From: Mytilus trossulus
Taxonomy: Eukaryota
NCBI RefSeq assembly: GCF_036588685.1
Contig: NC_086376.1
Location: forward strand, 64,356,001 to 64,420,000
DNA: 64,000 nucleotides
Direction: 5' to 3'
Within the stretch, counting starts at the first letter, position 1; each line of letters starts with the position of its first letter. This document shows positions 1-32,912 of the stretch, in pieces. The translations under genes and the position numbers were made by a program. The notes beneath the pieces were generated by a model that had not been told where the DNA came from, made no database searches, and saw nothing but the letters and a program-made list of their open reading frames with translations.

Positions 1-508
1 CGTGGAATCAACTTGTGATCGCTTTTATAAATGTTATTTGCTGAAAGTTCAGTGGAAAGTATTTGCTACCTATTGCCATGACGAAAACAAATTAAAAAGA
101 ATATATATGTTATATTGGCGATGTTCTTTACTGTTTTACATATGATAGGATAATCCCTTACTCCTCTATGACACAATCTATGGTTCGGTAAAAATGTCTT
201 GCCAACTAGAATTTAAAAAAATAAAGGTTTCTTTAATTTGTATAGTTGTAGCGAAACTTAATCAATTTGTCAAAGGAACAAACATAGTGGTGAAATAGAA
301 AAGCAGTATAATAGTTAGCTTTCAAATGGCCGACATGACAAAATATAAAAATGTTTAAACAAGAAAACCAACGATCTGATTTATGTAAATCAATATTTCT
401 TTACATCTGTTTTGGTGTCACATGTTGCGTGTCTCAGTAAAATCACGTGACGCGTTAAAAAGTTTTGAATTATTCAGCGGAAAAAAGGAATCAATTTCAA
501 AACAGAAG

Positions 509-15055: not shown

Positions 15056-16017
15056 TTCTGGTGGCGTTAGAAGCAAATTTGTAATATTGTATTGATAACA
15101 TTTACACGAGACGTTTCATTAAACTCATTGTCCAATATAAAGATAAGGGAGACATTGGTATACGTTTGTTGATAAGAAGCGATATCCTATAATTGACAGA
15201 ACAGAATGGGACATGTAACACTTTTTTGTCTCTTTTTTAAGGTTTGTTTACATTTAAATTAAGAGAATTAATTATAAGTCTTTATAAGAAAATTGTTCTG
15301 CCATTATAGATTTGATTGCGCAAAGGGCAATATCGCAGGGACTTGCATTCAAAACACTGTATATTGTTGTTAAAATAACATACTATCTATAATCACTTGT
15401 GGTATATAGTAATCCGCAGAAACACATTATATTTTATTGTGGGTAAATTTTTTAATTTGTACATGTGTAATGTATGTCAAGAAAATATAATAATGGTTGG
15501 GAAAACGAAATTTATCGAGATTACACTATGCGATTCTCTAATTTATTGGTGCTTCCTTAATTGTCCGTCGATCTATTCGGCTGATATATAATGCGTTGTT
15601 CGGCTGTGCTTTTTTTATGTGGTGATATATGTTCTTTTACGTATTCGTTTTTTGGGATACGATTTCTTTCAAACAATCTGTAGACTTATACCGGTGGCTC
15701 CGAGCAATGCCCTCACGTCAATCGTTTTATTCTAAACATTAAGGGATATCTCACCTTTTTATGATTGCCTTGTTTTAAAAGGTAAAAACAAACAAAGGGA
15801 TTGAACTTATTCAACTTTCCTATAATATTCTTTTCATAATCTTCATGTTTGATAATTCCCTTGACTTATATACGTGTTTTTAACAACGCGGAAAATCAGA
15901 TTTAAGCAGTATTTATATTTAGTGTTTTTATAAATTTAGAAACACGTTAGAGGGAAATCCAAGTTTTGATTAAATGTGAGAGTTCTCTGAATTCCGATAA
16001 ATCTATTTCTGTCATAT

Positions 16018-17022: not shown

Positions 17023-17240
17023 GTAGTTAGCCACCACTTCGATGTTAACATGTATATCAATTATATAGTCATTATTCTAAATACTTAGGACTTTCTTATC
17101 CCAGGCAGATAACCTTAGCCGTATTTGGCGCAACTTTCATCTTTGTTTGGCTTTCTTTGCTATTTTGACAGGAGCGTTACTGGTGAGTTTTATGTAGACG
17201 AAACGCGCGTATTAAATTATAAGCCTTTTATAACTATTAG
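17023..17240 (+). repeat. Degenerate retrozyme copy
   Basis: Same family as 14860-15055 and 56427-56750; hammerhead core mutated to CTGGTGA. Confidence 0.7.
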
Positions 17241-17746
17241 CTTTTCGGAATGTTCTATTGTATTGTTAATTTGTGTGTTTCTCTGTACTGTATGTTCTGC
17301 CATACATTTGTATTGTAGTCAAGTCATGCAATGTTGTCATTTTAGTGTTATGTTCAATTTTGCCATTAAAGTGGGAGGTTTGGCTAGCCACAAAATCAGG
17401 TCCAACCCACCATTTTCTTAAAATGTCCTGTACCAAGTCAGAAACATGGCTATTGTTATCTTATAGTTCGAGTCTGTGTGTGATGCATTTTAGTGTTTCT
17501 GTTATGTCGTTGTTCTCTTTTATTTGATTTCCCTCAGTTTAAGTTTGTAACCCGGATTTGTTTTTCTCAATCGATTGACGAATTTCGGACAGTGGTACAC
17601 TACTGGTGCCTTTATTTATACATATGATGCCAATAAAAACGACAAAATCAACATCACAATTATATCATAATTTTCATTCAATATATGAATAAATCAACAA
17701 CGATTAAGTTTGACATTGTAGTACGATAGTTTGCCTTTCATTGCAG

Positions 17747-20700
17747 ATTTGTATTATGTTGTTGGTACACGTAAACGGACAACATTCTGTCAATGACGCT
17801 ATTTCGTTTAGATATCTTGCGAATGTGGTGAGTATGAGATATTTTGCAGATGTAAACCATCTATATATGATAAAGAATTAGTAATACGATGAGCTGTGAG
17901 GTCACACAATAAGTTGAATAACTCTTATATTTACTTCAATTTTATCTTATTGTATCTGGTGATGTGAAAATAAAGTTAAGCACAATCTAATTTAGCTGTT
18001 TTGGAAGCACTATTTAAGTTTGATTATTTTACGGAACACTCTGAATCAAACACCGAAAGCAAAATACCAAAAGTTTTGCAACAATAAAATTTCTACGTAA
18101 ACCTTTTGGGGTCAACTTTGTATTAATGTGCTAGTCTTGTAGCTATTGTTGATGTGTTTGGAAACACCAATATCCGCAATTTTTGCCCCAAAAGAATATT
18201 TTTAGTTCTCGAGACAAATTAACTATCTGAATTAAAGAATGCTTATGTTGACTTCTATTCAACAGAGACAGAAGCCGAAACAATGTTTGTTTGTTAAGCA
18301 CCATTAAATCATGCTAAATTACTAAAATCTTCACAATTCCAGCATTTTAGTTCAATTTTAAACGGGTTCCGTGTAAAACCAAAGTGGCCGCATTCGTGTT
18401 CATCCAAAATATTGAAATGGAAGTTGTATTCGATGATCATACATAATATATATAAAGATTGAGAATGAACACGGATGCGGCCACTTTCGTTTTTGACAAA
18501 AACCATCTGAAAAGTGTAATTTGTTTTGCATATTTGGTCGATTTTTCATATTTGAGCTTGAATCAGATCGTTTTAAATGACTATATAAGTTGTTTTTTTT
18601 TTTTTTAAATAAGTTAAAATCTTTCACATAAATTAATTGAATCATATGAAATAGACACTAAAGCGCATACGATACAGTTTTGATCCTGTATTTACAAGGT
18701 CATGAAAATGTGCATATAGGCTATTTTTTACCTGATTAAATCTGTTTGATATGTATAAAGAATATAACTTCATGTGCTACTTTTTGAGTAAAATGAGGTC
18801 GAAATTTTGTAGATTTGCTCAAAATTCAGATTTGTGGCCGTAATTTCTTTTTCGAAAGAAAGACATAACTATTTTGTTATAAAGGATAAACACAAATTGT
18901 TTTTTGTTAAATAATCGGTAATTTGTGTATTTTATAAGTATCATAAAAAAATACGCATTTTTTTATTCAGAAATATCTTATTTTTATCAAATGTTCATGA
19001 ATTGAGAAAAATACGTTATTTTTTACTGCATGTTTATCAAAATTCCAAAAAATCCTCTATTTACAGTTTTATAAAATTTGGGTCACATAATCTCCCTTCA
19101 AAATGAAAAAAAGTGCCGTTTTGAAAAATAGGGGTCCATGAACGCGTTTTCAAATTAAATCAGTTTGAATGATAAAAATCAGTCGAAAAATGCATCTTTT
19201 CCCGATATGTCACAGTTTGACGTCGCGAAAATAACATTTTACGTTAGCAACGTCACTACCTCTACTGTAACTGTATCGTATGCTCTTACGTGTTTAAAAA
19301 GTGGTCAAAATCCTCCGTCAGATGAAACTGAAATTTGAGGCCAAAATAGGTCCTTACCGGACCTACTCCTTTGATTTGCTCTTCAATAGTTGTTTTAGAT
19401 TTGGGATATTTAAGTGTTTTTTGGCCTAAAGCGTCACTGAAGAGATATCAATATCGAAATGTGAATCTGGTGCCTTAGAGTTGATATCGTTTATATTATG
19501 GTAGTCGATGATCCATTTTAATGTTAAGTTTTTTTTTAGCAATACAATAATACTCTTTGAAAAGCATTTTCACGCATAGACTAGTTTTGCTATACAATTG
19601 TAATACACTTTGTTAATTAACAATATTTTATCAGACAGTTAGATGCATTCCTAATTAAACTTCTCGTTTCAGAATTGCCTATTTTAAGTATTATGTAAAA
19701 GCGAAGGTAATATCCGGTATATTGGATACACTGTGCTAGCCAGAGCATAGAAATCTGGCTTATATGAATAACCAATAATAACCAGTCCTTACGTTTTTTC
19801 TGGTGTGTTTTTTTTACATTTTCGCGCTTGCTAAAGATAACTTGTGGTTTTTATACGACCATACATGAACTCACATTGCAGGATGTACTTTTGATAAATA
19901 TGCTTTTTTTTCAGAATCATCTGCTATGCCTTAAAATATACCATGACTGTTACATGTATAACACTACGAAACAGGATCAGATTGACATGCACGGCACACT
20001 AACAATGATGGGCGTAGAGGTAATTTATTATACTGTAGGAAAACTACATAACATAGTAGACTAATGTCATAAGTATTATTGAAACAATTCTTCTATTTGG
20101 TTTATTATAGATTTTCTTACTTTTTGCTTTAGTTCTCTTTCTGCTTTGCCGATACAGATTTAAAAATAAAATAAGCGTTGCTGGTTTTATTTTCTGCTAA
20201 ATATCTATAAGATGGGAGTTAAAAAAATGTAGAACTGTTCCAAATAACTATTTTTTTTAATAGTTTGATATATTCAGCCGTTTGAAAAATTATTTTAGAA
20301 CGAATGTTATCATCTGGGTGTCACCATTCTATCCAATCCCCTTATTTCTTATCAGATCGTCTTCGTATGTAACTATGAAGGCTTTTTGGATTTTTTTATA
20401 TACAACTTAGAGTTTGTCAAAAACCATTTGTATACAGTGTTTGATTCTACAGAGGCAGTTTCGAATTTTTAACATTTACTTATTCTAATAAGAGATCTGA
20501 TAACTATAAACGTACAAAATGTATAATATGCAGTAAGCCTTTTGAAATTTCGCCATAAAATTAGGAAAAAGTAAAATCACAAAAATACTGAACTGAACTG
20601 ATAGAAAATTCAAAATGGACAGTCCCCAATCAAATGGCAAAATCAAAAGACAAAAAAACATCAAACGAATGGATAACAACTGTCATATTTCTGACATGGT

Positions 20701-22886
20701 ACAGGCATTTTCTTATGTAGAAATTGGTGGATTGAAGCTGGTTTCATATCGCTAAACTTCTCACTGTATGACAGGCACATGCAATTACATGATAGTGATA
20801 ACGGCCATCATAACGCTGCGTGAACAAAACAGACATAACACGTTTATTTGTCAGCAGTCATCACTGTGTTACAATCTAAAAAAAAAAAACAACAAACAAA
20901 CAAATATTTAACAAAGAAGAACTTGAAACTGGCAGTTGTTTTGAATATGTGCCTAGTGGTGGTGCTTTAAAAGCAACATAACAGACCACTGTTTAATACA
21001 ATAAAAGTTCACAGTAGAATATATATTTTTTTTTTTATTCACAAATTTGTATGAAATTATGAACATTACCACATTTATATTAACAAGTCCGCATCTACGT
21101 CACGCGTTTTCACACGCTTTTTGACATATCATGTCATGTCATGACATGATTTCCCATTGTCAGAGGTTGACATGTATGGATCATAACGCTGCGTGAACAA
21201 AACAGACATAACACGTTAATTTGTCAGCAGTCATCACTGTGTTACAATCTAAAAAAAAACAAAAAAAAACAAACAAATATTTAACAAAGAAGCACAACGA
21301 TGTTGAACTTGCAAATGAGTCAACGATCTACTGGCGACTGATTAGCGAGGATGGTTAAACTATAAATTATCATACGACCTTAATTCATGAGCAATTATGA
21401 TATTCTGTAAAACAATAAACTACAAAAGGAAAAGCCATATGAACATCATAGTCATGAATATCGACTTGAATTATGCTTGGAACACTAAACGAAAATTTTG
21501 TTTCCGATTTCACCGATTGTATTTCTCATTCTGTAGACTCTTATCATAACTAAAACTAAAATGAAAACTTACTATTTATAAATCTATACACCTTATCGCT
21601 ATTTGTACGCCATTACTGGACATCACACAGGTTCCCGTAAAACTTTGACGTCATACTACAAAATATCTGACGCCACAACGGAAAAGAGATTATTGTATTG
21701 CGTCAATAGTTCAAGCGGGACATAATCTCGGGTCAGCCGTGAGAAGCGATAAGGTGTATTAGATGGGTAATAAAGATAATCAACTACCCTGCTTACTACT
21801 GTGAAAGTACTTTTATTCGTGGGGTACCAATTTTCGTGGTTTTCGTGGATGACTTTATCCACGAATTTTAGTGTCCAACGTAATAAAACAACAATTGTCC
21901 AAATCAAAACGGGGAAAGATCCCCATTGGTAGGTTTGACTACTAATATGATCTAGAGAATATATTGAATAACACCAAATCTGCGAATACTTTAATAGCAG
22001 GCACAGAACTGCAACCGCATGCAGGATTATACCCATTTAATATTTTACAACCTAAACTGCACAACTTTTGATCTTTTAATTTTCATAAAAAATATTTTTG
22101 ATCGATGAAAGTCAAGTTTCCAGTATTGATATGCTTGAATGATAAAGTGTTCATTTTATATCCTCATAGTTCTGTTACATATTGTTATTTCCTTCAATCC
22201 AGACTGTTTGTAACCTTTCGTTTCTAATGGCTTTAATTTTTAATTTTTTATTTTAGAAAACTAAAATCCACGAATTTAAAAACCCACGAACATGTAAATA
22301 GTGCTCAATCCAAGAAAATTGATACCCACGAATTAAAGTACTTTCACAGTATTTGAAATGATTGTCGAACTGCAAATATATACGTGCATGAAATACATAT
22401 GTTAGAAGCACTGGTTTTCTGATAATCGATTCATTTAATAGTAAAGGTCTTGTTTGCGATAAAAAATAATGCAAAATAATGATTATTATCACCATCCTTT
22501 TTGTGATCACTATTCCTGTACTACAATAAGGTTTTGAAAACGTTCAGTTTCCCATATAGTGATAAAGATAATCTTTCTCAGAGATGTTTATACTAAACAA
22601 GAAAATGCACAAAGGATATTCAGCAAACTAAATAAAAATTGGAAATAGTTTTTTTTATTACCTACAACAAAAAATGTAATTCATTTAAACAACTGCTGCC
22701 TCTTAGTGTGTCAATGATATTACAATTCATTTGCAGGCAAAAGTTTTGAAGATGGTCACTGAAGATCGTGCAACTCACTTCAAAACTGCATCTAAGGATC
22801 ATTACAAACATGACTTAAGGTCATTTAATGGTTATTGTCTGCATGGAAGTGCCAATCTATGGGTATATAAAAGTCCTGTGTTTTGA
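17747..22886 (+). CDS. Small secreted protein A, divergent BRICHOS-like (first exon unresolved)
   Basis: Three open phase-0 exons with canonical splice sites: 17747-17827 (ICIMLLVHVNGQHSVNDAISFRYLANV), 19915-20019 (NHLLCLKIYHDCYMYNTTKQDQIDMHGTLTMMGVE), 22737-22886 (AKVLKMVTEDRATHFKTASKDHYKHDLRSFNGYCLHGSANLWVYKSPVF*). AATAAA at 22913. Each exon aligns with the corresponding exon of the paralog at 30333-32912. The gene model is well supported; the BRICHOS label is inference. Confidence 0.85.
18340..19372. mobile_element. Kolobok-type non-autonomous element remnant hosting a nested insertion
   Basis: Ends in TCCTTACCGGACCTACTCCT. Internal inverted repeat AAAGTGGCCGCATTCGTGTTCAT / ATGAACACGGATGCGGCCACTTT. 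The left end is not resolved. Confidence 0.5.
18663..19285. mobile_element. Nested ~620 bp TIR element at a degenerate TTAA site
   Basis: GCGCATACGATACAGTT ... AACTGTATCGTATGCTC; flanks TAAA / TTAC. Confidence 0.7.
20808..21292 (+). repeat. Local direct duplication of ~110 bp
   Basis: CATAACGCTGCGTGAACAAAACAGACATAACACGTT...TTTAACAAAGAAG occurs at about 20808-20920 and 21182-21292. Confidence 0.8.
21799..22349. mobile_element. Tc1/mariner-type MITE with TA TSD
   Basis: TA|CTGTGAAAGTACTTT ... AAAGTACTTTCACAG|TA. Related elements at 48832-49031, about 39470-39627 and about 41502-41691. Confidence 0.8.
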
Positions 22887-23604
22887 TTTCTGGTGTTGAG
22901 ACAAGTTTGATAAATAAATAGTGAATTAGTATTTTTCTATGTTTTGTTTGTTTTGAAGGGGAAGCGAGTAGTTTTATATTTAAATTAAACTTTATAATGA
23001 TGCTATAAAATGTATAATATCAAAAATACGGAACTCCGTGGAAAATTCATAAAGGAAAGTCCCTATAATCCAATGCCAAAATCAAAAGCTCAAACATATC
23101 AATCAAATGAATCACAACTGTCATATTCCTGAATTGGTACATGCATTTTCTAATGTAGAAAATGGTGGATTAAACCTGGTTTTTAGCGCTTAACCTCTCA
23201 CTTGTATGACAGTCGCATCAAATTCCACTATATTGACAATGACAACAAAACATACATGATAGCTGAAATTGTCAAAAAAGGGGTACAGCAGTCATCATCG
23301 TGTCAAAATCTCAAACACCAATGGTATCGACTTGGTGATTTTTTTAAATGAAATCTGTAGCACATTTTATGATTGAACTCTTAACAGGAACGCTCACAGC
23401 AAGAAAAGTTTGACAATCAAAATTGAAAAGTGTTTCAAAATAAGCTTAAATACCACATCTTCCTATATCTATTAAATAAAAATCTTAATGCTCCTTTAAA
23501 TATTAAAAACAATAGGCAAATTTGCCTGTTGTTGAGAGTCAGGACATCAAGGGGTCAGTCTACAGGCGTACAAATTGTTGAAATGTATACAAGACCACTT
23601 TTAA

Positions 23605-25060
23605 AAGAAAAGAGGGCGAAAGATACTAGAGGAACAGTCGTACTCATAAATCGAAAATAAACTGACACCGCTTTGGCTAAAAATGAAAAAGACAAGCAGA
23701 CAAATAATAGTACACATGACACAACATAGAAAACTAAAGACTGAGCAACACTAGCTTCAAAAACTGGGGGTGATCTCAGTTGCTCTGGAAGGGTCAGCAG
23801 ATCCTGATGTGACACCCGTCGTGTTGATCATGGAATTATTAAGCCGGGGTGGTGTTCTCGAAAGTATCCTAAGATTCGTCCTAAAGCACATCTTTTAAGG
23901 ATGGATTTAGGATCAACTTAGGACACTCTTAAGTTGTTTTTCGAAGCTATCTCAGACGAATCTTATGTTAGGACGTCCTAAACATATCCTAAGTCGAAAT
24001 TTTAAATCGTTAAGGTAAGGTAATTTTTTGATAAAACATCTACAGAATTAAATGCATAAATAACAATGTAATTATATCAAAAATGTTTGTTATTTAAACT
24101 GGAAAACAATTTGTTTTGAAATGATAATTAAATTTGTAGTGTAATCGTATCGTGAAACACGAAGTTCAACGTTTAAAATCATGCAAAATATCTTTCTATA
24201 CGAGTTAATAACCGATGGTGCGTTTCATTTCATGTTCATTTTCACGTAAAATAATGAGGAAAAAGCGAAATCCAAACTTTATTACACTAGGATGCAGATA
24301 TGATGCTCTTAAGACACCTTGTTGGGTGTCATAAAGTTAGGACGAAAAATGAGATATATCATAAGTTAAGAGAGCTTCGAGAACACAAAGAGTTGTCATA
24401 AGATAGACTTAGGACACGTCCTAATCCTAAGATAGCTTCGAGAACACCACTGACGGTAAATAGTCTAATTCGTTAGGTCACATTCATGAAAAGAAAAGGG
24501 TATTGTAGTAACGACATAAGAAACATATCAGATATGATCTGTGGAACGGTAATTCTATAGCGATCAACTTGGAAATCTTGGTTTAATAGCTTTCTTGTGA
24601 GCAGCATTCCTCTATCAAGGAAATCATGATAGGAAATACAAGCGCAAGAATATCGTATCAATTGAGAGATATATACTCTGTATGCAGGCGCTATAGGAAT
24701 TTTACCACATAGAAATGAATGAATACTTTATTGCAAAAAGCATATATATTCTATAGCAACGAAAAACATATTTACAACATGACAAATGATAAACAGCAGA
24801 GATCAATACATATAAATCATTACAAGAAATTAAATAACACTAAGTAGCAATATATGATCTGATTAACCACGCAGATTTAATGTAGTCACAATTTTTTTTA
24901 ATATGTAAAACAAACTTTAATTTAAATCGATACTGTAATTTAGTAAGAGAAATAGAAAGTTCACATTAAGGAAGCTAAAATCATCTCGTTTATTGTAAAG
25001 TTTTGTTTCCAAAAGACCCTCATTATCAATTTCTAGATGTAAGTCAAGATATGAGGCAGA
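23605..25060 (-). mobile_element. Penelope-like element 3' fragment interrupted by nested insertions
   Basis: Colinear with 61429-62100. The minus-strand ORF 24473-24661 (IRYSCACISYHDFLDRGMLLTRKLLNQ) is PLE C-terminal coding sequence. It is interrupted at 23846-24452 and about 24715-24950. Confidence 0.75.
23846..24452. mobile_element. MITE nested in Penelope-like fragment
   Basis: TIR GTGGTGTTCTCGAA ... TTCGAGAACACCAC, with subterminal TTAGGA/TCCTAA repeats. Host sequence resumes after the element. Confidence 0.75.
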
Positions 25061-26739
25061 CTGTAAATTAGCTCAAATGAGATTACAAATACCAAAACCG
25101 ACATCAACTAATACATAACGAACACCAATTTACACTATCAAGATCTACTCTGTTCATTAATCTGTAAATTGTTTTAGAAATGCAAATATAACGTTCATTA
25201 ATATCTTAGACATTTTATGAGCTAAGAGAACAACACAATCAAGGACAGGAAATATTCTCATAGACTGGAAATGATTGGTATTTTGGTTGCATGTAACTTT
25301 GCCTCTCTTACTGCTGATTCATTTCTCATTTGCTCATATCTCCACTGTTTCATATAAACATGTTTTGCTGACTATGCAGCATGGTTCTTTTCATAGTTGA
25401 AGGTCGTACGGTGATTTGTGGCTTTTGGTCTCTTGATACATATATATTAGTATGTATTCATTATAATCTTACCTCCTATACATTTCTAGGAATATGATTG
25501 GTTAAAAGCGACCTCGTGGAGACCGTGTATATTCAATATAAGGTTAGTAGAGAGGCGGGGATTATTTCATACACGGTTAGTTGTGATTTACAACTTGAGC
25601 CCTGTTTGATTTATTTAAAACTATTAAAGTTCTGTTTAATATTGTTGATGTCAAGGTTGTTGATAATAAATCTTTATCGTTTACATTAGTTGTTTAGTGC
25701 AGACTAATTAAAGAAGCTTCAAGGTTCTTAAAATTTAACACTTGAACACTTCAATACAGAAATAAGAAGATGTGTATGCTAGCAAATAAAGACAACTTTA
25801 GTCTAAATTCAACAAATGAAGATAATCAGTAAGATAAATTTGTTACATAGTGTGTAAGTGATCTAATATGATATATACAGGGTAAGTAAATTCCATATAA
25901 GGTTCGAGCTTCGCTAACATATACTTTAAAAACAACTAGTTTGTATTGTGACGGCTTGTATGTTCAGTTACTGTTTCGAAGTTTGTGTAGTAAGGCTAAT
26001 GGCATTATCTGGAAAATTGATGGTATATCTAAGAGATAATGAATGTCGTATATGTCAAAATGAAAGATATAAGACATTCAATTCTTTTGTCAACGGTTTG
26101 TAAATCCAATCTAGTTATAGAACAATATACGAATTCTTCATATTATGTAACTTACTTTAAGTTAGATAATACTTAATATAGGAATCGACAAGTTCTATAT
26201 GTTTTTAATGATAAACATGCGCTTGTAATCATGATTTAAAAATAAGTGTAATACTGTTAAAAGATTTATTTCTTTAATCATACTATTTTTGGGGGTTGTT
26301 TTTGTTTTGCTTGGCAATCCAAGAGTTGAAACATTTGTTTCGTTAACGAGGACCCCAACTCATTTCCTATATGTGAATAGATATTGTAAAGTTGATATTT
26401 TGATATAAGAAAACTTGAATTATTCGAATCCCATGATAGATGACAATGCAATCTATGGTTATATTCTACAAAAAAAATGTAGTAAAAGTTTCCTTGAAAT
26501 GCAGTTAGTGCTTTGAAGAAAATGTTTGTTTCTCGTTTAAAATGTGTCTACTACTACTAAAATAGAGATTAGTAGGGGTGTTGGTTATTTATAATACAAG
26601 ATATACATGAAAGATGTACCGATACGTATAAAATACTCTTGATTAGACATATTTGACTTTTCCAAATATGCAAATGCTAGAAGGGTCTGACATGTTCTTG
26701 TACATTGTATATGCATTAATACAATTATACCGCGGTTCG

Positions 26740-26885
26740 TAAATAAACTCATCATAGATACCAAATTTTGTATATACGACAGCACGGGTTTCGTCTACAA
26801 AAGACTCATCAGTGACACTCGAATCCAAAAGAGTTTAAAAGGCCAAATAAAGTACGAAGTTGAAGAGTATTAAGGACCAAAATGT
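26740..26885 (-). repeat. Retrozyme fragment with damaged hammerhead
   Basis: Minus strand reads CTGATGA-GTCTTTTGTAGAC-GAAA, but stem III and the cleavage triplet are altered. Confidence 0.7.
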
Positions 26886-27368
26886 TTTACACTTTGTCAT
26901 GTCTTTTTTAAAGCTTGTTATGAGGTATGGGTTTTGCTCATGAAAACCGCACAGTGATCTATAGCTAACCTCCAAGTGAATTATTTTGTCTCGGTGGATA
27001 TATCTAATGGGTAATCATGCCATATGTTCTTATTAACTTACCTGTTTTGCGCAAAAGTCAATGTTTTGCTGATGGAAATTAAAAGTAAAATAAGAAAATA
27101 CCGATTCCCAGGATAATTCATAAACAAATGGCAAAATCAAAAATCCACAAGCGAATGGATATCAGCCTGTCATACATCTGATTTGATACAAGCTTCTACA
27201 ATATATAAAGAATGGAAGATAAACTCTGGTGTTAAGGCATGATAAACCTCTTACAATTCCCGACTTTCGATATACAGAGTTATCGGTCGTTATCGGAGTT
27301 GTCTTTCTTGCGTGAAGGTGACGACACTTCCTTCTCTTCCGTAACGAGTGTAAACAATCAGTAAACTA

Positions 27369-29430
27369 ATGAAAATAGAAGACATAAATGATAAAACTAC
27401 GGTCGAGGACTTTTTAACTTTGAAGAAAAGTGATTTGGTACTATTCCTGCGATCAAGCAGTGCAAAGATATCTGGGAATAAAGACGAACTTACACGAAGA
27501 GCCTTTGAAACTAATCAAACAAACAATGTCGTGACTGCGTCACTGTCGACAGTTCTTGTTTCTTAAAACTCTTAAACTAATGACAATGTTGATATTCCCC
27601 CTTATAATGAACTATACTCTGGGTGGACTAGTGATCTATCTTTGCTGCCACTTGTTTCCCATCAGGATGTGGAATCCTTTCTCATTCACAGCAGTCACAG
27701 AACTGGAGACAATGAGCAAATGTTATGCTATCGCCAGTTCATCCGTGGATATAACTTTTTTAAAGAGAACTATGTTCATGACTTAATGATAAACAGTATT
27801 GATGATGATTGTGAAAGTTGTTACATCAGATCAAAGTGTTATACTTCCATGAAACAACAGGGACCATATCAACAATGGATTTTAATTTCAAAGAAAACAC
27901 CTGTTGTAGTTTTCAAAGCCAACTGTAGTTGTCCAGCTGGGTAAGTGTGTTTTTTTTATTTTACACTTTCATTATATCAAGTTGGGCCTTATAAGTGTTC
28001 AACACAAGACTTTCTTTTATTTAAAACCATCACTGTCTCCATGATTCAAATTTGCCTTCATTTAACATACATGACTATTTGCTAAGTTTGGTTTTATATG
28101 GCCATGTGGCTTTTGTAAACACGTTTTATGCCGGCAGACTAAGGCCGCAAGTGAAGACTATAATGTTGCTCACATTATCCTTATGGTCAGGCGAGCTAAA
28201 AAAATATAATATAAATAAGAAAATGTGGTATGAGTGTCAATGAGACAACTTTCCATTCAAAACACAATGTTGTTAAAGTTTAGCTTGCTGGTGGTTTAAA
28301 CCATTATTGTTCAACTTCAAACCAGTTTGTGATTTTACTGACTCTTAACTGCCCTTGTCATTTCTTCTTAAATGAACAATAACTCTGATTTCTATTTTCA
28401 GCCTAGGTGAAGGATGTACCCATATCGCAGGTCTTCTCTTCAAGCTTGAGGCATGTGCACAAGAAAAAGAAAATACTGCATGTACTTCAAAACCATGTAA
28501 TTGGAATAAGGGAGGTAAAAGGAAAAAAGATCCTCAAGAAGTCCTAAACATATCTTTCAAAAAGTTAAAATATGGTGGAAATGAACCATGTGCAAATGAA
28601 AAGAAAAATATATTTACTGTGAAAAATTCCATTACTGACCAAGGTCAGGATTTCTTATCACTATTAACAGCTAAATTTGGAAATTTGAATTATTCTCCAG
28701 CAATTTTTGATTTAGTTGCCCCAAGTTGTGAAGTTTATGATATTAATAGTGACATAAATGTAGATAATTTTGAAGAAGTTGAGACCTCTGAATATTTACA
28801 TTTTGAATCTGACAGCTACATAGACATTATGTCAATTGTTCAAAAAGAACCAGCAATAAATGAGACCATACTGCTCGACAAATTTATGAATATTCCCCAG
28901 ACAGTAATTGATGAGATAGAAAAAAGAACATTAGGTCAATCTGAAAATCAACTTTGGTTTGTTACCAGAAAATTTAGAATAACAAGTTCAAATTTTCACT
29001 CTATTGTTTCACGCAAAAAGGCAGATGTCGATAAATTAGTGCAATCTTTTTCTAAGTCGGCTAAGGTAATCAATGTAGCACCATTAATTTGGGGACGAAA
29101 GCATGAACCGATAGCAAGAAAAAAATATATTGCTCACAGAAGATTAAAATATGGTGAACAAAAATTTGTAAAAGAATGTGGTATATTCTTATGCGACAAA
29201 TTTGGATTTCTTGGTGCTTGGTGCTAGTCCTGATGGACTTGTTAAAAAGTGCACAAAGCTTGGTGAGGAAAAGTGTGTACTAGAGATAAAATGTCCATGG
29301 AAATGGAGAATGAAAACAATCAGAGAGGCATGTGCAAGATTTTTTCCTTGAAATTGATGAACAAAACAATATGCAATTGAAAAAATCCCACAAGTATTTT
29401 TCTCAAATACAAGGACAAATGGGAGTTGCC
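27369..29430 (+). pseudogene. SAP + SWIM zinc finger + YqaJ/lambda-exonuclease protein, disabled (DNA-transposon accessory gene type)
   Basis: Exon 27369-27940 has a SAP-like motif (LKKSDLVLFLRSSSAKISGNKDELTRR), two in-frame TAA at 27564 and 27573, and ends CSCPAG. A GT-AG intron spans 27941-28401. The next exon completes SWIM (LGEGCTHIAGLLF), then CTSKPCNW and the YqaJ motifs TLGQSENQLWFVTRKFRITSSNF, WGRKHE, GA(fs)SPDG, LEIKCP and HKYFSQIQGQM. There are two frameshifts and a 3' truncation. Confidence 0.85.
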
Positions 29431-29706
29431 ATTTTAATTCTATATAGGTATGTTACAAATCATTTCAGCACTGAAGCTCTGACTAGTGAGCTAAAAAGGT
29501 ATACCATTCTTTATGTTCGATTTGATTTTGTATTTTAGAATTTTTATTGTCATGTTGTACAACACAAGAACGACGAGAGCATTAATCGAAACTAAATATC
29601 CTATTTCACATTGGTATTATCAGTCGTGTCTTAATCACATATAAGAATGTGTAGAGAAAGATAATAAAGAAAGATAAAATAGAGTCCTCAATGAACTTAC
29701 GAGGAC

Positions 29707-32700
29707 ATGATGCGTTCAAAAGCACAACGTACTTTTAATCAACTCTTCAGGGTTTGTATTTACTTTTTAACATATCAATATTTTTTATTTACGAATTATC
29801 ACTTGTTACATTTGTAGCTATTTTGTTCGTTTAAAATATCAGAGCTCAAGTGTTAAACGAACAGTCATAAACAGTTTTGTATAGCAGTTTTCTAAAGACC
29901 TTTGAACTTTAGTCCCCACAAAAAAAAAACGGACGTAAATGCAAGTTGTCAATTCCTGATCAACTAAAGTGACTTCTACCGTGTTACTCCGGTTTAAATT
30001 AGTTGGTGAAACGTTTTCAGTGATTTTGCATGATACAATTGCAGACTTATTAATCAAGCAATTACTCAATTTATTATTTATCAGTAGTTGATGGATGTCT
30101 CTTAAATAACTGTATAACTATAATAATCTAAGTGTGATGTTAATTAAGCAAACATTGAAGGTTTAGAATATGAAAAAAGTATATCAGTGTTACTGTTTAG
30201 TATTATGATTCTGTTGTGTCGTAGTTCTCCTCTTATATTCAATTAGTTTCCCTCTGTTTCAGTTTGTAACCCGGATTTTTGTTTCTCAATCGATTTATGA
30301 ACAACGGTATACTACTGTTGCTTTTTTTGTAGGTGGTTGTATTGGCATGCATGTTATTCGTTGTGTTCGTGCAGACTGAAAACAATCAAGGCGAGACTGT
30401 AATTTTCAGATATATTCCCTATGCAGTAAGTAGTTAAACATTACTTCATTATTATTTATATATTATAAACTTAAAGATTTCCAAGTTCAAATTCGACAAA
30501 GAAAGAAGCTATAGTTCAAGGAGACAGCAAGTTAACGGCAAAATAAATGTAAAGACGATGTCCAAGTCCTTTATGAACCAAAACATCTTTTTAAGTGTGT
30601 TACTTTTTGAACGAAATACTCTCTGCAAAATAGGGGCGAAAGATGCCAGAGGAACACTTTTAAAAGTTCATAGATTGGAAAAAAAATGACAAGGCTATGA
30701 CTATAAAAAAGAAAGAAAAAACATACAAATAATAGTACACATGAAATGATCGTCTATTTCCTAGTGCAAGTTTTTTTTTAATATATCATGTATATACGCA
30801 ACCCGTTCGTTCGGAATGGAGAGGTTAGAAAAACACCGATTGGACGAGATAATTAACATTGTCTGCACCTTAAATTAACCTTAGTACTTATATTTGAAGG
30901 CTTCACAGGTCGACAGTTGCACTGTTTATTTCTTACCAGCTACAACATACCTCGTATATTAAAGTTACAGTCTAAATACAACCCCTTTAATTGGCGGATC
31001 CAAGGGTGGGGTGGGTGTCCGGGGGTTGGATCACTCCTTTTTTTTTTACGATCTATGCATTTGAATTGGAGCATATAGTTGGGCCCCTACACTTTACTCT
31101 GAGATGGGACCCCCAACCTTTTAAAACGGCTGGATCCGCCCCTTCCTTTTCCTTTTTAAGTATGCAGAATATATCAGATGGAAACATTGTTAATTTGTTA
31201 AAGACCTGCTTAACATAAAATATTAGCCATTGGATGTTCACCACGCAGCATACACTAATTGATGAATCTATGAGTGCCTCAGAGAAGATTAGTTTATTGT
31301 TACTAACTGAGTTTACCCTCTTTAAATAAAGAATTTATTATTATAATTATGAAAATTACTTTTTTATGGTACAGTCAACATTAATTTTGTAGTCACTCTA
31401 ATTAAGACAACGGAGTAAGTACTGTAAGGGCTATGGATGGCCCCGATTAATAAAATTGGATGGTACAAGATAAAAAAAAATTAAACTGTCTTTAAGACAT
31501 GTTAAAAAGTTTCATATTACTATTTGAGTCAAAGTTAAATTTAAAGCCTTGATTTCTAAATGCAAAATAGGTCGACATAAGAGATTTTAATGAAATTTGA
31601 CAAAATTGGCCGGATTTAAACCAAAATTAGGACTAGGAAACATAGAGTGCAGGAGTAGACACACTTTATATTCAAGTTAAACATGCCAAATGTCAGTGCA
31701 AACATTGTGTTCAAAGATCTTTTTTGTTGACGTATGCGCTCTATGTTCCCTGTCCAATAACCAATCAATGGAAAGATTTTTCGTGGAAAATAACAATGAG
31801 TACTGTTTGTGACGTCATCAGTAGAATGCAGGAACGTGAATTCTGAACAAAAAGGCTCACTTCCTATCCAGTCAATATGTTAGCTATGATTCATTGTGAT
31901 ATTGGTCAATAAATCATAATTTGAAATTTAAGAAAAATAAGAGGGCCCTTGTATGGCCGTATCGAACTTACAGTGTATTCATTTGTCTATCGTATCAGCC
32001 GTATACATTTTGGTTTTACGTCGTGTGGCGTGAATCTATTTTAGAATCATTTGTTCGCAGTTAGAAAGGGTAATCAGGGATGCTTCTTTTACAACACCAC
32101 TATACAAGAGAGAGCACAAATACATCACCCGGTAGACGTCTATGCTTTTGAGGTACGGCTAGAATTACTATTCTAATGTTTAGTAATGTTGTTTTTTTAA
32201 GTTTAAGGTATCATTAACATTTAAAATCAGTGATTCGACTATTTTCTCACACTGATTTTTATCTTTTATAATTCAATACTAGTATTGAAAGTGTTCTTTA
32301 AATGAAAAAAAAAGTGTATTCTTCAAATGAATGAAAAGAAAACAGCCACAAAATGTATTATTCTTACCAATATGACCTCCTTTTAACTGTACCATTGAAA
32401 ATATGTCATATGCTTTAGATAAGTTAAAAAAAAATAGATTGTACTCAAAACTATAAGATTTAAAGTAAGCGGTGAAATCGAACATATTATATGTATATAT
32501 TGTGCCCAGATAAGATAGATTAGAAACATTAAAACAAGACGCAAAATGTTCATGCATCCGAAACTCTTTTCTGGATTTGCTTTTATCAGGAACGTTCAAA
32601 GCCGAATATTTGAAAGCCGAGGATTTATAAGTTCACAAAAAAAGAGAATCTTTAAAAAAAGATTTAACAGTAGTAAATTTAATTTAAAACAAACAATACC

Positions 32701-32912
32701 TATCCATTGAGTTATCCTAGTGGGTTTTTTTTTTTGCTGATACTTTGCTTTTTTTTTTGCAGTTAAAAGTCTTGAAAATGGTACATAACTACACGTCATA
32801 CTTTAGAGCAGCGCCTAAGACTCTTTATCATACTGATCCGGATATCAAAGTATACATTAACTTTTGTAACAAGGGAACCTTTCCTGTATGGCTTTTTAAA
32901 GGTCACACCTAG
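29707..32912 (+). CDS. Small secreted protein B, divergent BRICHOS-like, 4 exons, ~131 aa
   Basis: Exons 29707-29751 (tentative, MMRSKAQRTFNQLFR), 30333-30425 (VVVLACMLFVVFVQTENNQGETVIFRYIPYA), 32045-32152 (NHLFAVRKGNQGCFFYNTTIQERAQIHHPVDVYAFE), 32763-32912 (LKVLKMVHNYTSYFRAAPKTLYHTDPDIKVYINFCNKGTFPVWLFKGHT*). All are phase 0 and GT-AG. TATAA at about 29640. Paralog of 17747-22886. Confidence 0.85.
30990..31143. mobile_element. Short hAT-like MITE
   Basis: GGCGGATCCA ... TGGATCCGCC inverted termini; no clean TSD. Confidence 0.55.
31428..31967. mobile_element. Possible ~540 bp Kolobok-type insertion in gene B intron 2
   Basis: Imperfect inverted ends (ACTGTAAG-GGCTATGGATGGCC / GGCCGTATCGAA-CTTACAGT) and a composition distinct from the flanks. 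Confidence 0.35.

Follow-up and report, generated by a model that had tools for sequence, protein, structure and literature searches.

The BRICHOS-containing proteins include the gastrokines, which are vertebrate proteins of about 180 amino acids (aa) in which a C-terminal segment follows the domain, and annelid antimicrobial-peptide precursors such as that of arenicin. Another annelid precursor of this kind is that of alvinellacin (PMC5431198). The client region is usually C-terminal, behind a furin-type site. BRICHOS domains are always accompanied by an aggregation-prone region that they chaperone, and proSP-C is the only BRICHOS protein in which this client is N-terminal to the domain (PMC10182729). 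One Asp and two Cys are the only near-invariant residues of the domain. Among 1908 single BRICHOS domains, the Asp is present in 97% and replaced by Asn in 2.7%, with Glu or Ser in the rest; some GKN1 domains carry the Asn. The Asp gives a pH switch in proSP-C and Bri2 (PMC9627735). OAF (Out at first) was recognised as a BRICHOS family only through comparison of AlphaFold models (PMC9714404). Here we describe two genes in a stretch of 64,000 nucleotides (nt) of the Mytilus trossulus genome (contig NC_086376.1, positions 64,356,001 to 64,420,000 of the forward strand). This whole stretch is called the window and corresponds to G000:C4:64356001-64420000 in our searches of the 1.3 Gb assembly. 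Together with a third paralog, the two genes encode small, predicted secreted proteins that are probably BRICHOS-like in fold, as very divergent relatives, while the hallmark Asp and a client region are absent from them.

Gene 1 is LOC134714106 (protein P0006, 123 aa) and gene 2 is LOC134714107 (XP_063431424.1, protein P0002, 131 aa). Both products are named "uncharacterized protein [Mytilus trossulus]" in RefSeq; the genes, which the initial annotation of the window had described as hidden, are hidden only from the track of open reading frames (ORFs). Each gene has four coding exons with AG acceptors and GT donors, and the introns are all in phase 0. There is no N anywhere in the window. The exons are listed below.

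15206-15241, + strand: gene 1 exon 0, taken from the N-terminus of P0006; ATG and 11 codons that form the first part of the predicted signal peptide, then a GT donor.
17747-17827, + strand: gene 1 exon 1; remainder of the predicted signal peptide, with likely cleavage between VNG and QH, and the first strand with F-R-Y; the joint 17827/19915 is present in runs X1, X2, and X3.
19915-20019, + strand: gene 1 exon 2; by predicted secondary structure, two strands and the start of helix 1, with the first conserved Cys (C51) and the invariant N-T-T sequon.
22737-22886, + strand: gene 1 exon 3; KVLKM helix, helix 2 with the Cys C108, the last strand LWVYK, then four residues and the stop codon TGA (22884-22886).
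29707-29751, + strand: gene 2 exon 0, which equals the N-terminus of P0002; ATG and a basic N-terminus of 14 codons, then a GT donor.
30333-30425, + strand: gene 2 exon 1, placed by piecewise protein match; hydrophobic, Val-rich stretch, then the first strand, which contains F-R-Y.
32045-32152, + strand: gene 2 exon 2; strands, the conserved Cys C59, and the N-T-T sequon.
32763-32912, + strand: gene 2 exon 3; KVLKM helix, helix 2 with the Cys C117, the last strand VWLF, then four residues and the stop codon TAG (32910-32912).

The exon translations agree piecewise with P0006 and P0002. All eight peptides quoted in the initial annotation lie on the + strand where it had placed them, and the exon borders that it proposed are canonical (AG before, GT after) and in phase 0. 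Its exon set was incomplete: the ATG-bearing exon 0 had been overlooked in each gene (15206-15241 and 29707-29751), and the start of exon 1 of gene 2 is at 30333, 12 nt earlier than the position 30345 it had given.

Transcript evidence for gene 1 was obtained by placing the contigs of four public runs, presumably of RNA, on window positions 17050-23040. Three of the runs, which come from two organisms, have contigs with the joints 17826>19914 and 20017>22735, both of the GT..AG type. Within the stated ambiguity, they are the junctions 17827/19915 and 20019/22737 that had been predicted from the genomic sequence. The exons in these contigs differ from the window at 0-3 positions, and outside repeats the introns have a depth of zero. 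When the whole genome was searched with the family profile, each exon was matched separately and no intronless copy was revealed; therefore, the joined form in the contigs represents a spliced transcript and not a retrocopy. One contig from run X3 extends 30 nt 5' of position 17747, and a missed 5' exon was therefore suspected. Exon 0 of gene 1 is conserved in comparison with exon 0 of the third paralog (blastn). The predicted junctions of gene 2, 30425/32045 and 32152/32763, are identical to those of the RefSeq model XP_063431424.1, which is a gene model and not a set of reads. Both genes are thus real, spliced, and annotated but uncharacterised.

In every run, thousands of contigs match four intronic or upstream stretches of gene 1 (17050-17650, 18250-19450, 20450-20850, and 21450-22450). 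These stretches are repeat families that are abundant and transcribed, and the unique intron sequence between them is at zero depth.

The family is not restricted to the two genes originally proposed. An exon-3 profile search of 1.84 billion representative proteins gave exactly two matches; this search and one word-based search together provided three full-length family proteins, and the word-based homologue searches gave back family members only. A third intact gene, LOC134714009 (XP_063431334.1, P0001, 122 aa, again "uncharacterized protein [Mytilus trossulus]"), is located at G000:C4:55417366-55423335 on the same chromosome, 9 Mb upstream of the window. This genome accordingly contains three intact family genes, and the cluster of P0001 includes one full-length protein from M. 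edulis and two fragments from M. galloprovincialis. The proteins of genes 1 and 2 are 30% identical over 118 aa (expectation value (E) 3e-19), whereas gene 1 and the third paralog share 68% amino acid identity, with 0.19 nonsynonymous substitutions per site (dN), 0.69 synonymous substitutions per site (dS), and a dN/dS ratio of 0.27. The dS to gene 2 is saturated. Because gene 1 is far closer to the third paralog than to gene 2, the dispersed duplication is the younger event and the tandem pair is old. In the three paralogs and in M. edulis, the reading frame is open through all four exons. The family evolves under purifying selection, as had been proposed from the open but divergent frames.

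Exon-2-like pieces were also found at G000:C6:7934947-7935090 (+), C13:13821802-13821879 (-), and C10:29600631-29600738 (-); two of them have an in-frame TGA and one is open. Local hidden Markov model scans of 10-20 kb around these pieces detected no exon 1 or exon 3 partners, and the pieces probably stem from dead copies or match by chance. In the ESM Atlas, the nearest neighbours of the family are three mollusc-only clusters of hypothetical proteins of 127-150 aa with 62-118 members, which hints at a wider mollusc family.

The precursors are 122-131 aa in length. All four family sequences share, without change, two Cys (C51 and C108 in P0006), an N-T-T sequon directly behind the first Cys, the F.Y of the first strand, NHL, KVLKM, and the W..K near the end. 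Behind an N-terminal hydrophobic run of 13-16 residues, there are small residues at positions -3 and -1, with VNG before Q and VQT before E; in P0002, a basic segment precedes the run VVVLACMLFVVFV. The hydrophobic N-terminus, the conserved Cys pair, and the conserved sequon noticed at the outset are borne out. The hydrophobic run, which is the sole hydrophobic segment of these proteins, is likely a targeting sequence and is predicted to be a signal peptide. Within the family, conservation is lowest in these signal sequences. The mature parts would comprise 99-101 aa and are basic, with an isoelectric point of 8.0-9.2. The C-termini are SPVF, GHVF, and GHT, and the proteins end 4-5 residues past the last strand.

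To compare the family with known folds, AlphaFold2 models were built from the four-sequence alignment. The predicted domain opens with three antiparallel strands in a row; helix 1 follows, then a short strand, helix 2, and one last strand. In the P0002 model, the strands are residues 37-43, 48-54, 58-63, 96-98 (short), and 124-127, and the helices are residues 66-71, 75-90, and 108-116. The resulting order, b-b-b-a-b-a-b, is that of BRICHOS domains (PMC9714404, PMC10182729) minus the strand before the F-R-Y strand. A Foldseek search of 350,542 chains with the P0002 model placed chains of 2yad, the BRICHOS domain of proSP-C, at ranks 1, 2, 5, 9, and 10, with an E value of only 0.54. In a structure ranking of 48,161 chains, BRICHOS came first for both paralogs; with the P0006 model, 2yad_A was first and 8ox2 was third. 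The structural match spans approximately 89% of the ordered 2yad chain at a structural identity of 9-11%. By ESM Atlas features, GKN1/BRICHOS was the top named cluster for both paralogs (0.89 and 0.88, with 186 and 182 shared features), and SP-C-like and OAF clusters ranked lower. The Atlas model of P0002 has a template modelling (TM) score of 0.52 against an SP-C BRICHOS cluster and of 0.51/0.57 against a gastrokine-2 BRICHOS cluster, over 90-92 residues.

The position of the Cys pair in the model points in the same direction. The published BRICHOS disulfide joins the sheet to helix 2 (PMC10182729, PMC9714404). In the P0002 model, Cys59 is in strand 58-63 before helix 1 and Cys117 is just after or at the end of helix 108-116, a placement that matches this disulfide. 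The aligned ranges, 35..127 and 97..197, place Cys59 near Cys121 of proSP-C, by arithmetic on the ranges and not by residue alignment. As in the BRICHOS fold, the model has a central beta-sheet with two alpha-helices at its sides that superposes on solved BRICHOS structures, with one Cys of the pair on the sheet strand that leads into helix 1 and the other at helix 2. The fold assignment gains support because a family named beforehand comes first for two paralogs of 30% identity by three methods. The fold best matches BRICHOS in these predictions, and the structural support is positive but modest. We regard the proteins as probably BRICHOS-like in fold and not as demonstrated members of PF04089.

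Several results weigh against this assignment. On the structural side, the alignment behind the models is shallow and their predicted local distance difference test scores are low (60 for P0006 and 72 for P0002), Foldseek returned no matches for the P0006 model, and, taken singly, every score falls within the range designated unreliable by the tools themselves. On the sequence side, neither the single exons nor the full proteins P0001 and P0002 matched PF04089 (curated cut-off, 25 bits) at E values up to 10, and the precomputed Pfam annotation of P0001, P0002, and P0006 is empty. A six-frame PF04089 scan of the genome was positive for exons on C14, C3, C9, and C10 but not for the window. A sequence profile search of the Protein Data Bank detected no BRICHOS; its sole match, a pollen allergen at E 1.6, was rejected. 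When the family profile was aligned by hhalign to exons of the Pfam-positive mussel BRICHOS genes, the E values of 0.076, 0.32, and 0.6 were not significant, and the alignment was Cys-to-Cys only in the first of the three (E 0.076). Motifs in common with the BRICHOS gene on C3 (A.VLK, DL.RF, and KGH.F-stop) had been spotted by eye and were dropped after shuffling gave p values of 0.12-0.78. The residue at the BRICHOS Asp position, placed by the D-aromatic motif and by the spacing to the Cys (17-18 residues here vs 16), is basic: the motif is F-R-Y in P0006 and P0002 and F-K-Y in P0001 and P0003. Finally, the family proteins contain no furin site, dibasic site, mature peptide, or aggregation-prone tail. 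The absence of the Asp and of a C-terminal client, both of which the initial annotation had noted, is thus borne out. Its BRICHOS label holds as the best fold match of both paralogs and their top named ESM Atlas family, but no sequence method links the proteins to PF04089, and its interpretation as a whole is partly supported.

Other Pfam candidates were also rejected: DUF3724 at E 0.068 in the exon-by-exon scan as a chance match, and BRCA-2_helical, COX14, and DUF3724 at E 0.16-0.34 with the full proteins as noise.

The gene organization was compared with that of the BRICHOS gene on C3. Its middle exon has 37 codons vs 35-36 in the family described here, both flanking introns are in phase 0, and the 3' intron is at Cys+24 vs Cys+23. 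This likeness is suggestive at most, and we give it little weight because the exon borders of the C3 gene are without transcript support. A word-based search with the C3 exon, a query of limited length, gave no homologues.

The C3 gene itself is located at G000:C3:70093015-70094305 on the minus strand. Its last exon ends only 17 residues past the domain, and a dibasic KK is followed by a 13-residue tail, perhaps a client or peptide of very short length. Upstream exons of this gene were not found. A tandem array with a unit of approximately 98 bp (G000:C3:70097600-70099300) is located upstream of it and gives rise to a recurrent short ORF motif in each of the three frames.

Compared with the described systems, the mussel proteins share different features with each. 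The BRICHOS domain of proSP-C (2YAD, PF04089) has Asp105, which ends the strand ahead of the Cys-bearing hairpin, at the position occupied by Arg or Lys in the mussel proteins; the latter are not matched by Pfam. The mussel proteins are also without a predicted strand before the F-R-Y strand, which begins 6-10 residues from the predicted cleavage site, and the second, proSP-C-specific disulfide, the linker, and the transmembrane SP-C client are not present in them. The gastrokines GKN1 and GKN2 are secreted, with a signal peptide directly before the BRICHOS domain, as is predicted for the mussel proteins. However, gastrokines are matched by Pfam, while the mussel proteins stop shortly after the last strand and have a basic residue at the Asp site. 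The annelid antimicrobial-peptide precursors, which form the AMP BRICHOS group, likewise derive from marine lophotrochozoans, are secreted, and are encoded by duplicating genes (PMC9627735, PMC5431198); however, they carry a C-terminal beta-hairpin antimicrobial peptide as the client, and such a peptide is absent from the mussel proteins. OAF, whose clusters are among the ESM feature neighbours of the family, is an earlier case in which a BRICHOS family came to light by comparing AlphaFold models and not through existing annotation.

The best explanation of these observations, to which we assign a probability of roughly 0.6, is that the paralogous mussel genes encode free, secreted, client-less BRICHOS-like domains that act in trans. 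After removal of the signal peptide, each product would be a free secreted, glycosylated, single-disulfide BRICHOS-like domain without a client of its own. With the exposed face of its sheet, it would act in trans on other secreted proteins by binding their beta-prone segments, as an ATP-independent chaperone. The Asp appears to have been exchanged for a permanently charged Arg or Lys; because of this exchange, the pH switch would be lost in any such activity. The anti-amyloid function in trans is purely inferred.

The same proteins may instead be lineage-restricted secreted mussel proteins with a small alpha/beta fold of their own. Their likeness to BRICHOS would then be an analogy, or an artefact that arises when structures are predicted from a shallow alignment and when language-model features are compared, and their function, for example as matrix, mucus, or immune effector, would be unrelated to chaperoning. 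Such an origin is consistent with the failure of every sequence method to reach BRICHOS, with the exon-3 profile finding only the family itself among 1.84 billion representatives, with the empty Foldseek result for P0006, and with the absence of the hallmark Asp and a client region. Against it stands the ranking of the pre-named BRICHOS family first of 48,161 chains by two paralogs that are only 30% identical, and of a second BRICHOS entry third. In addition, Foldseek agrees with the ESM Atlas features and structure, most of the ordered 2yad chain (~89%) is covered, and the Cys pair is on the expected elements. We consider an independent fold somewhat unlikely.

The Val-rich N-terminal stretch could also be read as an uncleaved type II anchor that is the client of the domain itself, which would make the products miniature membrane proproteins of the proSP-C kind. 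P0002 begins with a basic segment of 15 residues, followed by VVVLACMLFVVFV, the client of proSP-C is a poly-Val SP-C helix N-terminal to the domain (PMC10182729), and both the structural and the feature neighbours include SP-C clusters. However, the hydrophobic runs of 13-16 residues have the length of a signal peptide and are short for a membrane span, and plausible -3/-1 cleavage sites (VNG before Q, VQT before E) follow them. The gap between the stretch and the first strand is only 6-10 residues, vs a linker of approximately 30 residues in proSP-C, and conservation in the family is lowest in the signal sequences. A membrane-anchored proprotein is thus very doubtful. The exon-2-like relics with in-frame stops scattered elsewhere in the genome might suggest that the genes are pseudogenes, or spliced non-coding RNAs with open frames by chance. 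This explanation is effectively refuted by the four open exons in three paralogs and M. edulis, the dN/dS of 0.27 at a dS of 0.69, the invariant Cys and sequon, the spliced transcripts, and the RefSeq protein models.

Between the two BRICHOS-like genes, at window positions 27369-29538 (+) and chiefly at 28619-29224, there is an ORF fragment with a viral alkaline exonuclease/YqaJ recombinase domain (E 2.5e-13). It has further short ORFs beside it, looks like a decayed gene of the mobile-element type, and ends approximately 170 bp 5' of the first coding exon of gene 2.

If the fold assignment fails, an ordinary small family of lineage-restricted secreted proteins remains. A wider proposal is that the genes belong to a mollusc-wide clade of minimal, client-less secreted BRICHOS proteins, in which the Asp was exchanged for a fixed positive charge and the domain serves as a free trans chaperone for byssal, mucus, or shell-matrix proteins. 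We consider this proposal unlikely; if it is true, the rule that a BRICHOS protein always comes with its own client would no longer hold. A family with the fold and the Cys pair but without the Asp or a client would test what the Asp does, and whether BRICHOS can evolve into a stand-alone secreted chaperone. It would also give the first functional lead for three mussel genes that are at present named only 'uncharacterized'.

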